Below, in pieces: positions 3,016 to 6,213 of a stretch of DNA of 64,000 nt. The notes below the pieces were generated by a model. The model made no database searches and was not told the origin of the DNA. It was given only the letters and a program-made list of their open reading frames with translations. A program made the position numbers and the translations under genes. The stretch lies in the sequence record PQ066597.1; one strand, 5' to 3'. The stretch's first letter is position 1. Each line of letters starts with the position of its first letter.

Positions 3016-3059
3016 AAGTTAAACATCCTTTCTAACTGTGATATGATGTTTATATAAAT
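3010..3059 (+). promoter_or_regulatory. tRNA promoter, copy 2 of the 50-bp direct repeat
   Basis: Identical to 1849-1898; immediately upstream of tRNA-Arg. Confidence 0.8.
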
Positions 3060-3060
3060 T

Positions 3061-3137
3061 GCGCTGTTAGCTCAGTTGGATAGAGCAACGTTCTTCTAAA
3101 GCGTGGGTCACTGGTTCGAATCCAGTACGGCGCACCA
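3061..3137 (+). tRNA. trnR: tRNA-Arg (TCT)
   Basis: Cloverleaf, loop CT-TCT-AA, TTCGAAT, CCA. Confidence 0.95.
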
Positions 3138-3221
3138 CGGGATGTGGTGAAATTGGCAGACACACTAGATTTAGGTTCTAGCGCCATAGGCGTGACGGTT
3201 CGAGTCCGTCCATCCCGACCA
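3138..3221 (+). tRNA. trnL: tRNA-Leu (TAG)
   Basis: CGGGATG/CATCCCG acceptor, CTAGA-TTTAGGT-TCTAG, variable arm, CCA. Confidence 0.95.
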
Positions 3222-3222
3222 A

Positions 3223-3298
3223 GCGGGTAAGGTGTTTATGGATACATGCAAGCCTTCCAAGTTTGAGTAGACCGGATCGTTACCGGCTACCCGCTCCA
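3223..3298 (+). tRNA. trnG: tRNA-Gly (TCC), atypical T-loop
   Basis: GCGGGTA/TACCCGC acceptor, loop CT-TCC-AA, T-loop ATCGTTA, CCA. Confidence 0.85.
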
Positions 3299-3309
3299 AG
3301 ATTTAAAAT

Positions 3310-3379
3310 TGATGTGTTACAGCTATCAGCTCACCGTTGAAAGAATACGGATAAGTCGGCTCGACTAAAGAACATATCA
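3310..3379 (+). ncRNA. candidate ~70-nt structured RNA between tRNA-Gly and tRNA-Ile
   Basis: TGATGTGTT/AACATATCA closing stem with two inner hairpins (CCGT/ACGG, AGTCG/CGACT). Confidence 0.45.
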
Positions 3380-3382
3380 TTT

Positions 3383-3459
3383 GGCCCCTTAGCTCAGTAG
3401 GTTAGAGCAGCCGACTCATAATCGGTTGGTCACTGGTTCGAGTCCAGTAGGGGCCACCA
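3383..3459 (+). tRNA. trnI: tRNA-Ile2 (CAT, lysidine type)
   Basis: GGCCCCT/AGGGGCC acceptor and body closely resembling enterobacterial ileX; anticodon CAT; CCA. Confidence 0.85.
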
Positions 3460-3481
3460 AATTTTTGATGAGAGCTATATT

Positions 3482-3676
3482 ATGTCTGGTATAAAATCCA
3501 TAATTGAAAATTGGTCAGTTGGTGATGGTATAATCCACTGGAAAAATGGACGCCATAGTTTAGTAGTCTTTGGGTTTGCTCCAAATGGAGAACCTGCCTT
3601 TAAGTTTAAAGGTAAGAATAAACTTACGTCAGTAAGACAGATTGAAAAATCCATAGTTAATGCATATATTCTATAG
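3482..3676 (+). CDS. hypothetical protein within tRNA cluster
   Basis: ORF track; GATGAG RBS-like sequence upstream. Confidence 0.6.
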   Translation: MSGIKSIIENWSVGDGIIHWKNGRHSLVVFGFAPNGEPAFKFKGKNKLTSVRQIEKSIVNAYIL

Positions 3677-3836
3677 TCGTAAGCTCTCACTAATTTAATG
3701 GTCGTTGACCTTACGATAATAATGAAGCGATACAGAGTCCCATCGCTTCTAAAAATATCAAAAGGGATGTTGATGCGCGTATGTAGCCGGGTTATAATGA
3801 CCAAGATTCATGAAGGGTGAAAGACCACCCTAAATA
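3677..3836 (+). ncRNA. candidate structured RNA
   Basis: Stems TCGTAAG/CTTACGA, GAAGCGAT/ATCGCTTC, AGGGTG/CACCCT; ends at CTAAATA (3830-3836). Confidence 0.35.
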
Positions 3837-3841
3837 TTCAT

Positions 3842-3919
3842 AGCGGGGTGGAGAAGTCAGGAGTTCTCACCAGACTCATTATCTGGAAATCGGTGGTTCA
3901 AATCCACCCCCCGCTTCCA
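3842..3919 (+). tRNA. trnM: tRNA-Met (CAT), initiator-like body with atypical anticodon arm
   Basis: AGCGGGG/CCCCGCT acceptor, CCAGA-CTCATTA-TCTGG, TTCAAAT, CCA. Confidence 0.85.
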
Positions 3920-3920
3920 A

Positions 3921-3997
3921 TGGCGTGTAACTCAGTAGGTTAGAGTGGCGGACTGTTAATCCGTATGTCGTGGGTTCGAATCCCACCTCGCCAGCCA
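3921..3997 (+). tRNA. trnN: tRNA-Asn (GTT)
   Basis: Cloverleaf, loop CT-GTT-AA, CCA. Confidence 0.95.
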
Positions 3998-4003
3998 AAT
4001 TCT

Positions 4004-4094
4004 GGATGTTCGGCTACGATGGCGGTGTAGCGGCGGACTGTAAATCCGTTCCCTCTGGGTAAACAAGTTGGTTCGAATCCAACAACATCCACCA
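4004..4094 (+). tRNA. trnY: tRNA-Tyr (GTA)
   Basis: GGATGTT/AACATCC acceptor, loop CT-GTA-AA, long variable arm, CCA. Confidence 0.95.
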
Positions 4095-4101
4095 AATAGA
4101 A

Positions 4102-4246
4102 GAAGTTAGAAGACGTTCTGATAAAATCCTCGGAGACGATGCCCCCTTGCGGTTTTAAACCGTTACGGATAAGCACGGGGTAATCCAAATCAACCATTAT
4201 AGGGATGTGGTCATCTGGTATGTAAAATACAGTTGATTTGGAACTT
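4102..4246 (+). ncRNA. candidate ~145-nt structured RNA
   Basis: AAGTT/AACTT closure, perfect TCCAAATCAAC/GTTGATTTGGA stem, CCCC/GGGG stem enclosing CGGTTTTAAACCG. Confidence 0.5.
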
Positions 4247-4248
4247 TT

Positions 4249-4324
4249 CGGTGATTAGCGCAGTTGGTAGCGCGTCTGGTTTGGGACCAGAGGGTCACAG
4301 GTTCGAGTCCTGTATCACCGACCA
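4249..4324 (+). tRNA. trnP: tRNA-Pro (TGG)
   Basis: CGGTGAT/ATCACCG acceptor, loop TT-TGG-GA, CCA. Confidence 0.95.
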
Positions 4325-4337
4325 CTTAGCACAAAGA

Positions 4338-4599
4338 ACGGGTAACGACGTATGCCCCGGAATAAGCCAGCCATAGAGAATCTGGATATCCTGAAACGTG
4401 CCTTTAGGTTTCAGGCGGGATTGGTAGTACAAAGACGATATGGTAACTACCCCTTGACAAGCAGGGTTGAACTTGAGGTAACTGTCCTTTACCAAACAAC
4501 GAACAGATGGACAAAATCGGTTGAACGTCCTTCCTCGATATGATAGCATGTCAACCACATTAGGATATAATCACAGTCTAACGATCCTGATTATAATCC
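4338..4599 (+). ncRNA. candidate ~260-nt structured RNA
   Basis: Five or more hairpins: CCTGAAAC/GTTTCAGG, GGTAGT/ACTACC, CCCT/AGGG, GGTTGA/TCAACC, GGATATAATCA/TGATTATAATCC. Confidence 0.45.
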
Positions 4600-4602
4600 G
4601 CT

Positions 4603-4678
4603 GCCGAATTAGCTCATCTGGTAGAGCACAGCCTTTGTAACGCTGGGGTGGTCCGTTCGAGTCGGACATTCGGCACCA
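4603..4678 (+). tRNA. trnT: tRNA-Thr (TGT)
   Basis: GCCGAAT/ATTCGGC acceptor, loop TT-TGT-AA, CCA; C.C mismatch at base of anticodon loop. Confidence 0.9.
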
Positions 4679-4684
4679 AATTTT

Positions 4685-5165
4685 GGATTCTCGTCAATAG
4701 TCCGGTCTATGAGAATCGACGCTTTAAGTAGCCCACCGGTATTTGTAAAAAATCTAGTGAAAGCTAGAAAATAAAAACCGAACCCCGACCTCTCCCATTA
4801 CTCGAATGGTGATGTAGGTTCCTTCCCTGTAATAAGGTTCTAGTCCGTGACGGGTAAAAGGTTACATAGGGAGTATTGCTTGTGAATGACCACTGATTCA
4901 AGCCATCACATAAGCGCGTCCGTTATGACGTTAAATATAAGGCTTAGATTCCCATAAGGGCCTAAGCGTAAAAGTAACGAGCAAGACCGTTTTGCAGGCG
5001 TAGCCCATTGGGGTGATGATGTTTGTATGTTGGGCTCGGATAGCCAATGCTATTAAGTCCGGTGATGGTGCGACCGGATCGATTTACGGAACCACATCAA
5101 CAAGTATGTGCCTTGGTGGTTCGACCTGCTTTGCAGCCGCACATGAAGCTAAAACTTAAAAAGAG
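4685..5165 (+). ncRNA. candidate large ornate ncRNA (~480 nt)
   Basis: No ORF >=60 aa in the track; more than 10 local hairpins, long-range TTTAAGT-AGC/GCT-ACTTAAA and CATCAC/GTGATG helices, pseudoknot. Confidence 0.65.
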
Positions 5166-5302
5166 AGGTTGTATATGTCACCGCTAAACGCAAGCCGTTA
5201 GGACGTAAAGGTAAAAATAGTGTTTTTGTAAATGGTTATACCAATAATGGTATTCCGGTTTTATGTAATGTATTTTATCAGTTTGAAACAAATGGTATTC
5301 CA

Positions 5303-5497
5303 TTGGATATTCTGATAGAGAAATTTTATAATTCCGGTTATATTATTGATTGGGTTTCTTTCGTTAATGATGCTTTCAAGATCGGATGGAAGAAAGAAAC
5401 TGTAATAAAAAAGATAAAGTATGCATTTGATGATATTGAGATAAATGATTCAAATGAAATACTAAACCGTGTGATTAAATACATAGAAAGCCTGTAA
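5303..5497 (+). CDS. hypothetical protein (YQFETNGIPLD motif); true start probably upstream
   Basis: Frame open from 5153; RBS+ATG at 5175 is out of frame (see findings). Confidence 0.6.
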   Translation: MDILIEKFYNSGYIIDWVSFVNDAFKIGWKKETVIKKIKYAFDDIEINDSNEILNRVIKYIESL

Positions 5498-5507
5498 GGA
5501 ATGATAT

Positions 5508-5759
5508 ATGGGTAAGACATTTCGTCGTAAAAATGAAAAACATCTGGACAGTTGGTATGGTGATGAACTTAAAGTGAATCGGGATCTGGGAGATAAATAT
5601 CCTAGTTATCCAGAATCGGGTGTCAAAGATCGTTATAATACATTGAGTCGTCAGCGAGATCGTAAATTGAAACATGATATCATGCACGGTAATCACGATG
5701 TTTTTGTTGATGATGATTACGAAATGAAAAAGGCTAACGCCGGTTATCAATATAGTTAA
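5508..5759 (+). CDS. T4-like hypothetical protein (MGKT-x-RRK...YQYS)
   Basis: AAGGA RBS; N- and C-terminal patterns recalled from a T4-type hypothetical family. Confidence 0.7.
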   Translation: MGKTFRRKNEKHLDSWYGDELKVNRDLGDKYPSYPESGVKDRYNTLSRQRDRKLKHDIMHGNHDVFVDDDYEMKKANAGYQYS

Positions 5760-5768
5760 GATTTTAAA

Positions 5769-6010
5769 GTGTACGCGCCCCAAGAGTGGCGCAGCGGCGT
5801 CAAACAATACGAGTCAAGGGTAAAGGTGATACCCTGTATTGTCACTAGACGAAAAGAGACCATATTGCCTCGATTATGGTCCCCGTTTTAAAGAGGGTGG
5901 TGTGACCTACCACTATCACAAGGTTGTTGTCTGACACCAAAGACAACGTTCGGCAACGGGGACTTTATCTTGCTTTGACTGGCTTGATATAGTCCCCGTT
6001 TTTCTTTTTA
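5769..6010 (+). ncRNA. structured element with terminator/antiterminator architecture
   Basis: Multiple hairpins; AACGGGGAC (5956-5964) can pair with GTCCCCGTT at either 5879-5887 or 5993-6001 (the latter followed by a T tract). Confidence 0.6.
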
Positions 6011-6027: not shown

Positions 6028-6213
6028 ATGTTGACTGGAATTTTTATTGTGTATTTGATTGGTGTTCTGGTATTCATTACCGCATTTGGGATTACCGATC
6101 ATCAAGACCGAGAAGAGGATAGGACCCCTACTTTTAAAGAAGTTATGGATTATCTTTCTGTATCAGCAATTTGGCCCGTTTTGATTGCTATGTCGATTAT
6201 TCGTAGTCTTTAA
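6028..6213 (+). CDS. small membrane protein
   Basis: Two hydrophobic segments; GGAGA RBS. Confidence 0.7.
   Translation: MLTGIFIVYLIGVLVFITAFGITDHQDREEDRTPTFKEVMDYLSVSAIWPVLIAMSIIRSL

Follow-up and report, generated by a model that had tools for sequence, protein, structure and literature searches.

What lies between the transfer RNA (tRNA) genes of Aeromonas phage vB_AdhaM_G2 (G2 below)? The window analyzed here, 64,000 nucleotides (nt) of sequence record PQ066597.1, comes from this T4-like phage, which stands near Ceceduovirus CC2. It carries nine CCA-ending tRNA genes on the + strand at 3061-4678, on which ARAGORN and Rfam agree, and an extra tRNA-Leu at 1901. In these arrays most tRNAs are spaced 1-10 nt apart, without any structured module. 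A first-pass annotation of G2 had picked out six longer spacers, here called A to F, and had proposed that they give rise to at least six structured non-tRNA RNAs, one per spacer. All six spacers lie where the annotation had put them; spacer F, however, is not flanked by tRNAs but lies beyond two open reading frames (ORFs), and a real ORF sits within 3460-3676. Internally, the spacers are built from smaller modules (B1/B2, D1/D2 and E0/E1/E2/E3) that have been gained and lost independently among relatives.

The proposal that several structured non-tRNA RNAs reside in this operon held up, with compensatory changes many in D1, E1 and F, and some in E2. The count of one RNA per spacer did not, as B is mainly a promoter, A and C are weak, and E holds at least two separate RNAs. 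We regard the existence of at least three real structured RNAs as very likely, and sequence comparison supports at least four candidate structured RNA genes, D1, E1, E2 and F, the support for E2 being moderate. As the likeliest account, we take these four to be discrete, stable RNAs that tRNA-processing enzymes of the host would cut from the tRNA transcript and that would act in trans.

The D1 and E1 RNA families

D1 is an RNA of about 190 nt on the + strand (4325-4513) that folds into five nested hairpins and three pseudoknots, the latter tying down both ends. The eight counted helices are H1 (4339-4342/4356-4359), H3 (4390-4395/4410-4415), H4 (4423-4428/4446-4451), H5 (4452-4456/4462-4466), H6 (4477-4481/4489-4493) and the pseudoknots PK1, PK2 and PK3. 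PK3 (4329-4332/4398-4401) joins the 5' end to the loop of H3, PK1 (4458-4461/4472-4475) joins the loop of H5 to downstream sequence, and PK2 (4484-4487/4509-4512) joins the loop of H6 to the 3' end. In a covariance-model alignment of 13 sequences, the 38 counted pairs are paired in 99.4% of 493 cells, and half of them (19) show compensatory changes. When one partner was slid by 1-3 columns as a control, only 30-42% of cells were paired for the same 38 pairs, with 1-5 compensatory pairs. Invariant U-G pairs fix the RNA on the + strand. A further helix, H2 (4367-4370/4382-4385), is visible in every sequence and is register-shifted between clades, so it was read by eye and left out of the 38 pairs. 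RNAalifold, run on MAFFT alignments, had mis-registered this helix, along with hairpins Fa and Fd of F and the GNRA hairpin of E1, both described below; H2 was rechecked by eye and the others by per-sequence scripts. RNAalifold also offered 4497-4499 as an alternative partner for 4472-4475, which covaries as well and competes with PK1.

BLAST searches with the G2 sequence, and subsequently with that of an Escherichia jumbo phage, recovered D1 homologs in Aeromonas phages (Ceceduovirus, Ishigurovirus), in Bragavirus phages of Proteus, Morganella and Shigella, in T5-like Novosibvirus, in Asteriusvirus phages of Escherichia and Salmonella, and in Klebsiella Alcyoneusvirus. A covariance model built on ten sequences returned 13 loci at E <= 3e-17; one of them, on a divergent metagenomic phage contig of 120 kb, retains every helix and all pseudoknots with different bases. 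An exact-pattern scan of the IMG/VR and JGI metagenomes yielded one useful divergent D1. The model found no match in the tRNA regions of T4, Aeh1 and Jiaodavirus, and a scan of 185,579 bacterial and archaeal species genomes turned up no copy of the D1 core pattern.

The position of D1 relative to its neighbors points to a defined 5' end. In six contexts D1 begins 0-5 nt past the CCA of a tRNA, from which a short A/U linker separates it, and that tRNA is tRNA-Pro, tRNA-Gly or tRNA-Leu depending on the phage. In two jumbo-phage genera that have no tRNA upstream, D1 starts 6-7 nt past the end of an 11/12 sigma-70 promoter of the extended -10 type. Thus, the 5' end would be set either by tRNA processing or by transcription initiation, and we take this placement, as read from the sequences, to be strong evidence that D1 is a discrete RNA gene.

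A start 0-5 nt past the CCA of three tRNA types would also fit a new self-cleaving ribozyme: D1, and perhaps E1 too, might cleave itself at the 5' edge and thereby free the 3' end of the upstream tRNA. The compact, pseudoknotted fold with invariant unpaired nucleotides would suit such an activity, for which there is a precedent beside the tRNAs of gut phages (PMC10879173). However, no Rfam ribozyme family matched at E values up to 10, and the three separate hairpin-loop pseudoknots differ from the nested double pseudoknot of ribozymes like that of hepatitis delta virus (HDV). Moreover, D1 of the jumbo phages begins at its promoter and so has nothing upstream to cleave, and a 2',3'-cyclic phosphate left on an encoded CCA would prevent charging of the tRNA. 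We therefore think a ribozyme very unlikely.

A protein-coding role for the spacers is more improbable still. ORFs of 40-63 codons do occur in them (for example 4352-4543, 5013-5159 and 5769-5891), and some GenBank records label "hypothetical proteins" over these stretches, as would be expected if the spacers encoded unannotated small proteins. Yet the ORFs inside the spacers match no phage protein family in a PHROG scan that matched all of the small ORFs nearby. The 63-codon ORF inside D1 (4352-4543) is among those without a family, and 1-nt insertions and deletions within D1 disrupt it in relatives. Substitutions in D1 follow the paired helices rather than codons. We reject the coding reading on the indels and the missing PHROG matches, and give it next to no chance of being correct.

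Downstream of the promoter-driven D1 of Escherichia phage vB_Ec-M-J, about 150 nt of GC-rich, hairpin-forming sequence ends in T8 (comparison locus L017, 2594-2750). The jumbo-phage D1 transcript may be a two-domain RNA of about 350 nt.

E1 occupies 4763-4937 on the + strand. Its core (4795-4875) is a multi-helix junction of about 80-110 nt. Besides a closing stem, it contains a hairpin capped by a GNRA-type loop (4801-4805/4811-4815) and an outer stem (4812-4817/4862-4867), which encloses the invariant CCUGUAAUAAGGUU hairpin (4826-4837) and a 3-base-pair hairpin (4843-4851). The 3' extension (4876-4937) adds two hairpins. Homologs were reached through the invariant CCUGUAAUAAGGUU block, and a covariance model of 74 positions returned 14 loci at E <= 1e-13. 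The stems of the GNRA-type loop covary, appearing as CCAUU/AAUGG, CCAAU/AUUGG, CCAUA/UAUGG and CCUUG/CAAGG. In the 3' domain, 10 pairs are 97% paired, five of them with compensatory changes, compared with 24-57% paired in the slid controls.

E1 sits between tRNA-Glu and tRNA-Ile in T5-like Aeromonas phages and adjoins tRNAs in two other Straboviridae. The scan of the IMG/VR and JGI metagenomes with an exact E1 pattern found it in three contigs, one of the three loci being doubtful. Among the 185,579 bacterial and archaeal genomes there was a single match, in a contig labeled as a Phocaeicola sp. metagenome-assembled genome. Apart from its E1 copy, this 4.9-kb contig (JBOFFJ010000068.1; locus L036) is little more than 23 tRNA genes, whose order matches that of the array in the T5-like Aeromonas phage AhSzw-1, and it probably represents phage DNA that was mis-binned with a bacterial assembly. 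From the distribution of homologs, the D1 and E1 families appear to have spread horizontally among unrelated virulent phages: T4-like phages, T5-like phages, jumbo myoviruses and a siphovirus.

Several further observations concern E1. Three Acinetobacter phages of about 105 kb contain sequence with 93.5% identity to a 31-nt piece of its 3' extension (4881-4911; hairpin UGAAU..AUUCA). A resemblance to the nexus of a Cas9 trans-activating CRISPR RNA (AAUAAGG..CUAGUCCGU) was judged a coincidence, because those bases vary among E1 homologs. In the uncultivated 120-kb contig IMGVR_UViG_3300033696_000004 (locus L032, 39-332), a divergent E1 (39-117) directly abuts a divergent D1 (117-332), and about 190 nt more of non-coding sequence follows 3' of the pair before a tRNA-Thr. 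This adjacency hints that E1 and D1 may work together.

E2, F and the remaining spacer modules

E2, of about 147 nt (4938-5084, + strand), consists of four hairpin domains with a folding-energy z-score of -2.4. Its 43 pairs are 98.7% paired and include four with compensatory changes; many G-U pairs are invariant, which fixes the + strand. Diversity is low because E2 is confined to Aeromonas phages. In CC2, P19, ZPAH1 and Aswh_1, E2 stops 3-4 nt short of a tRNA-Trp. G2 lacks this tRNA between E2 and E3, with the junction at 5082-5084 (compare loci L004, 3713-3787, and L005, 4219-4293), and seems to have lost it by a clean deletion that spans a short ATT repeat.

F, of about 190 nt (5769-5955, + strand), lies downstream of the ORF at 5508-5759 and forms eight helices: Fa (5775-5792), Fb (5798-5801/5848-5851), Fc (5804-5842), Fd (5858-5881), a pseudoknot (5868-5871/5893-5896), Ff (5897-5913), Fg (5925-5948) and a closing helix (5882-5887/5955-5960). 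Three lineages (G2/CC2, 65/avDM6 and ZPAH1/Aswh_1) differ in six of the eight, the pseudoknot among them, and every helix stays complementary. A scan of the IMG/VR and JGI metagenomes with an F pattern gave two chance matches only. Immediately downstream is an intrinsic terminator (5956-6010, + strand; stem 5956-5964/5991-5999 and a T run). The closing helix of F and this terminator overlap in the G2/CC2 and 65/avDM6 lineages, where the 3' strand of the helix runs into the 5' arm of the terminator.

This overlap keeps a cis-regulatory reading of F in play. Instead of a free RNA, F could be a leader, acting as a riboswitch-like aptamer or as an attenuator that binds a protein, and could control the terminator at 5956-6010 and hence read-through into the small genes from 6028. 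The order of elements, a structured domain followed by a terminator and then a ribosome-binding site with an ATG at 6028, is what such a leader would have, and helix 5882-5887/5955-5960 shares bases with the terminator 5' arm in the G2 and phage 65 lineages. On the other hand, ZPAH1 and Aswh_1 retain the F helices while both the terminator and the competing helix are absent, riboswitch families give no match, and F forms the 3' end of the upstream transcript, a frequent origin of stable small RNAs. We consider regulation by F possible but doubtful, and prefer to see F as a discrete RNA like D1, E1 and E2.

Signals measured across whole spacers were less uniform than the comparative evidence. 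The first-pass annotation had described the spacers as GC-richer and multi-stem. The former is true of D, E and F, where GC content is 0.44-0.49 and that of the coding DNA on either side about 0.29-0.40, and barely so of A (0.36), B (0.37-0.41) and C (0.40). The latter shows only modestly relative to dinucleotide shuffles, for A, C, D2, E2 and F, with z-scores of about -2.0 to -2.5, but D1 (+0.24) and E1 (-0.27) are not significant despite having the best comparative support. The 41 control windows had a mean of 0, a standard deviation of 1.0 and 7% below -2. Folding energies no better than those of shuffled sequence had been named beforehand among the grounds for giving up the idea of structured RNAs; applied here, that rule would wrongly reject D1 and E1. 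The lesson for methods is that the two best-supported RNAs are invisible to folding-energy z-scores.

The Rfam covariance-model check that the annotation had called for places the spacers outside known families. In a scan with Rfam 15, only tRNAs passed the gathering threshold, and no credible spacer match appeared at E <= 10. Families without a match include GOLLD, ROOL, Drum, riboswitches, small ribozymes, transfer-messenger RNA, 6S and Y-RNA-like RNAs. The lone sub-threshold overlap with a spacer was to a eukaryotic small nucleolar RNA model, GlsR25 (5129-5221; 17.3 bits against a gathering score of 100; E 4.9).

Might the spacers be debris, that is, decayed tRNAs, homing-endonuclease scars or recombination linkers? 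The array is a mosaic, homing-endonuclease genes have inserted into it in relatives, tRNA-Trp was cleanly deleted in G2, ARAGORN makes degenerate "tRNA-???" calls in some relatives, and A and C are lineage-restricted. All of this would be expected of debris. A pseudo-tRNA origin is nevertheless rejected, since neither ARAGORN nor Rfam predicts a tRNA in any spacer at E values up to 10. Spacer identity between G2 and phage 65 is 85-95%, a tRNA-like level of conservation, compared with about 73% for adjacent ORFs. Dozens of pairs have changed in a compensatory manner with essentially no broken pairs, and the RNA families are shared by phages of different families. Covariation refutes debris in the case of D1, E1 and F; for the spacers as a whole we rate it highly improbable.

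The other modules are less clear-cut. Spacer A (3299-3382, + strand) lies between tRNA-Gly and tRNA-Met, has z-scores of -2.1 (+ strand) and -0.3 (- strand), has no Rfam or tRNA match, and is found only in CC2-type phages. Spacer C (4095-4248, + strand; z = -2.1), between tRNA-Tyr and tRNA-Pro, is likewise present at full length only in CC2-type phages. The case for A and C as separate structured RNAs is weak. The start of C (4099-4133, about 35 nt, GAAGAAGTTAGAAGACGTTCTGATAAAATCCTCGG) is 90-94% identical to sequence that follows tRNA-Asn in about 150 T4-like phages of Klebsiella, Enterobacter and Raoultella. There, the relatives of GAAGAAGTTAGAAGACGTTCTGATAAAATCCTCGG head a 250-nt non-coding spacer (comparison loci L030, 1501-1537, and L003, 3220-3259), and this segment may be a further tRNA-linked RNA family or a processing signal.

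Spacer B is, on sequence evidence, mostly a promoter with flanking hairpins and is not supported as a separate RNA. B1 (3677-3749, + strand), which follows the ORF at 3482-3676, has hairpins at 3677-3683/3710-3716 and 3727-3734/3742-3749, the second of which covaries between lineages (AGCGAT/ATCGCT versus AGCTGT/ACAGCT). B2 (3770-3841, + strand) carries a sigma-70-type promoter (TTGATG-17-TATAAT, 3770-3798) and a leader of about 36 nt before tRNA-Met (3842). A hairpin in this leader (3815-3819/3826-3830) also covaries (GGGTG/CACCC versus GGGTA/TACCC), and B2 is about 77% conserved out to Aeh1-type phages.

D2, E0 and E3 are conserved. D2 (4514-4602, + strand; z = -2.5) is a hairpin-rich linker or leader before tRNA-Thr with TATAAT-like boxes at 4564-4569 and 4592-4597. 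E0 (4679-4762, + strand) begins with a hairpin (4686-4693/4709-4716) that shows one compensatory change, continues with a 17-mer, CGACGCTTTAAGTAGCC (4716-4732), and ends with a small hairpin. The 17-mer is nearly invariant across seven Aeromonas phage lineages, with one substitution each in phage 65, avDM6 and CC2, and the hairpin 5' of CGACGCTTTAAGTAGCC differs between lineages. The GACGC at the 5' end of the 17-mer could pair with GCGTC at 4928-4932, which would enclose E1. E3 (5085-5165, + strand) is the segment that follows tRNA-Trp in relatives; at z = -0.2, a stable structure is not evident.

Beyond the spacers, the ORF at 3482-3676 within the tRNA cluster and those at 5303-5497 and 5508-5759 downstream each match a PHROG family of unknown function. 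In relatives, homing-endonuclease genes (HNH, segD-like) occupy differing positions in the arrays (loci L005, 2259-2762; L006, 3286-3645; L029, 835-1440), which is consistent with shuffling of modules among these phages. The arrays of T5-like Aeromonas phages contain a tRNA with a CUA anticodon, called "tRNA-Pyl" by ARAGORN (loci L013, 437-511; L019, 6910-6984; L036, 334-408), a potential amber suppressor.

Release and role of the RNAs

How would the RNAs be made? Directly 5' of tRNA-Arg, a 41-base-pair repeat on the + strand (3019-3059) bears a T4-early-like promoter (TAAACA-16-TATGAT with TG, 3020-3047). An identical direct-repeat copy lies at 1858-1898, 5' of tRNA-Leu(UAA), and each copy is 2 nt from its tRNA. 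The transcript of tRNAs and non-coding RNAs likely starts from the repeat at 3019-3059. We propose that two sigma-70-type promoters, at 3020-3047 and 3770-3798, drive joint transcription of the modules and the tRNAs. Host tRNA-maturation enzymes would then excise the modules, with RNase E and 3' exonucleases working on the A/U linker of 4-5 nt that follows each CCA and RNase P cutting at the 5' end of the following tRNA. The excised products would persist as discrete stable RNAs, as T4 species 1 and 2 do. On balance, given the arrangement of the genes, we expect that the RNAs are released as discrete stable species.

Certain observations weigh against discrete RNAs that are freed from a tRNA transcript. 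As described above, neither D1 nor E1 folds better than shuffled sequence. The ends and the stability of all the RNAs are read from gene layout. In the Shewanella siphovirus KASIA, E1 is flanked by the terminase and portal genes and is distant from any tRNA, and D1 of phage 65 follows two predicted ORFs, where a promoter scan found none. Finally, E2 and F are limited to a few closely related lineages of Aeromonas phages, so their compensatory changes come from 3-4 independent sequences.

Gene layout also bears on a role in cis, in which the modules would serve as folding insulators or as platforms for RNase E and RNase P on the tRNA precursor and be degraded afterwards. In nearly all phages the modules are within tRNA arrays, D1 abuts the CCA with a short A/U linker, and E2 stops 3-4 nt before tRNA-Trp in relatives, as a processing aid might. 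We nevertheless find such a role improbable. In the Escherichia and Klebsiella jumbo phages D1 stands alone, with a strong promoter of its own and no adjacent tRNA, and the E1 of KASIA has terminase and portal genes as its neighbors, as noted. Most array tRNAs, 1-10 nt apart, do without any module, and three pseudoknots with invariant loops exceed what an insulator needs.

We return, then, to stable RNAs that act in trans. In the last and weakest step of this proposal, the RNAs would bind a protein or ligand and alter host RNA metabolism or blunt a defense directed at RNA or tRNAs. A protein- or ligand-binding role is favored by the compact folds with both ends locked by pseudoknots, by the travel of these genes with tRNA arrays between unrelated virulent phages, and by the occurrence of D1 as a free-standing, promoter-driven gene. 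Even so, a binder, decoy or regulator acting in trans is a tentative assignment, which we hold at somewhat less than even odds. More speculative, and on present evidence unlikely, is the idea that D1 and E1 are founders of new, horizontally mobile RNA classes carried with the tRNAs as counter-defense or host-takeover cargo, with D1 either a specific inhibitor of, or decoy for, a host enzyme (a nuclease that targets RNA or tRNAs, or an RNA-processing enzyme) or a new catalytic RNA.

Three-pseudoknot architectures are typical of ribozymes and high-affinity aptamers, and phage tRNA arrays are now seen as counter-measures to tRNA-cleaving host defenses. The latter makes the G2 RNAs concrete targets for deletion, pull-down and structural work. 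D1 also occurs in phages that infect laboratory Escherichia coli. More broadly, structured RNAs in phage tRNA operons extend beyond T4, one operon here having four or more, and two families travel among T4-like, T5-like, jumbo and siphovirus genomes, in every case on the tRNA strand. The function of T4 species 1 and 2 has been unresolved for decades, and the G2 locus adds to that question.

Comparison with known RNAs

To our knowledge, the species 1 and 2 RNAs of T4 are the only prior examples of stable non-tRNA RNAs in phage tRNA operons. Like them (rnaC and rnaD; 139 and 119 nt), the G2 RNAs lie on the tRNA strand, adjacent to tRNAs and within the tRNA operon, and the same route of production from a tRNA precursor is expected for them. 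The two T4 RNAs, stable products of the tRNA operon, are annotated beside tRNA-Arg; as the first-pass annotation had stated, they are of unknown function, and this is still the case (PMC9697503). Homology to them is rejected, as BLAST with a word size of 7 returned only chance 9-13-mers, and the D1 and E1 covariance models, run over T4 70.5-72.7 kb with filters off, found nothing significant. A loose likeness between E1 and rnaD (GUUCC...CUGAGUAAGG) was also rejected; the E1 model has no significant match there, and its weak matches miss that segment of rnaD. Unlike the T4 RNAs, the G2 modules are more numerous and larger, D1 has three pseudoknots, and D1 and E1 occur beyond T4-like phages.

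GOLLD and ROOL are phage-borne structured non-coding RNAs that are often found beside tRNA genes; they are 500-800 nt long and form multimeric cages. The tRNA neighborhood is common to both groups, whereas the G2 RNAs are 80-190 nt and have no Rfam match to either. Y-RNA-like RNAs (YrlA) are reportedly another class of tRNA-linked structured non-coding RNA, found in phages as well. The sole YrlA match here reached 19.6 bits, well short of the gathering score of 69, and coincides with true tRNAs at 3890-3946; no tRNA-like domain was detected in the spacers, and no Ro60-like match occurs among the neighboring ORFs scanned in this region against PHROGs.

The HDV-like theta ribozymes are pseudoknotted, lie just downstream of phage tRNAs and are tied to tRNA 3'-end formation (PMC10879173). 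D1 differs from them in that its pseudoknots are three separate ones of the hairpin-loop type, not the nested double pseudoknot (P1, P1.1, P2, P3, P4). There is also no model match, the G2 tRNAs already encode CCA, and D1 exists as a promoter-driven, stand-alone gene as well. Searches of the literature by topic and by literal sequence turned up no description of the G2 RNAs, and a 2023 catalog of about 10,000 candidate structured RNAs from viruses (PMC10690425) may contain fragments of them. We conclude that these are new RNA families of the type represented by stable RNAs in phage tRNA operons, set apart by an elaborate fold and a distribution that crosses phage families.

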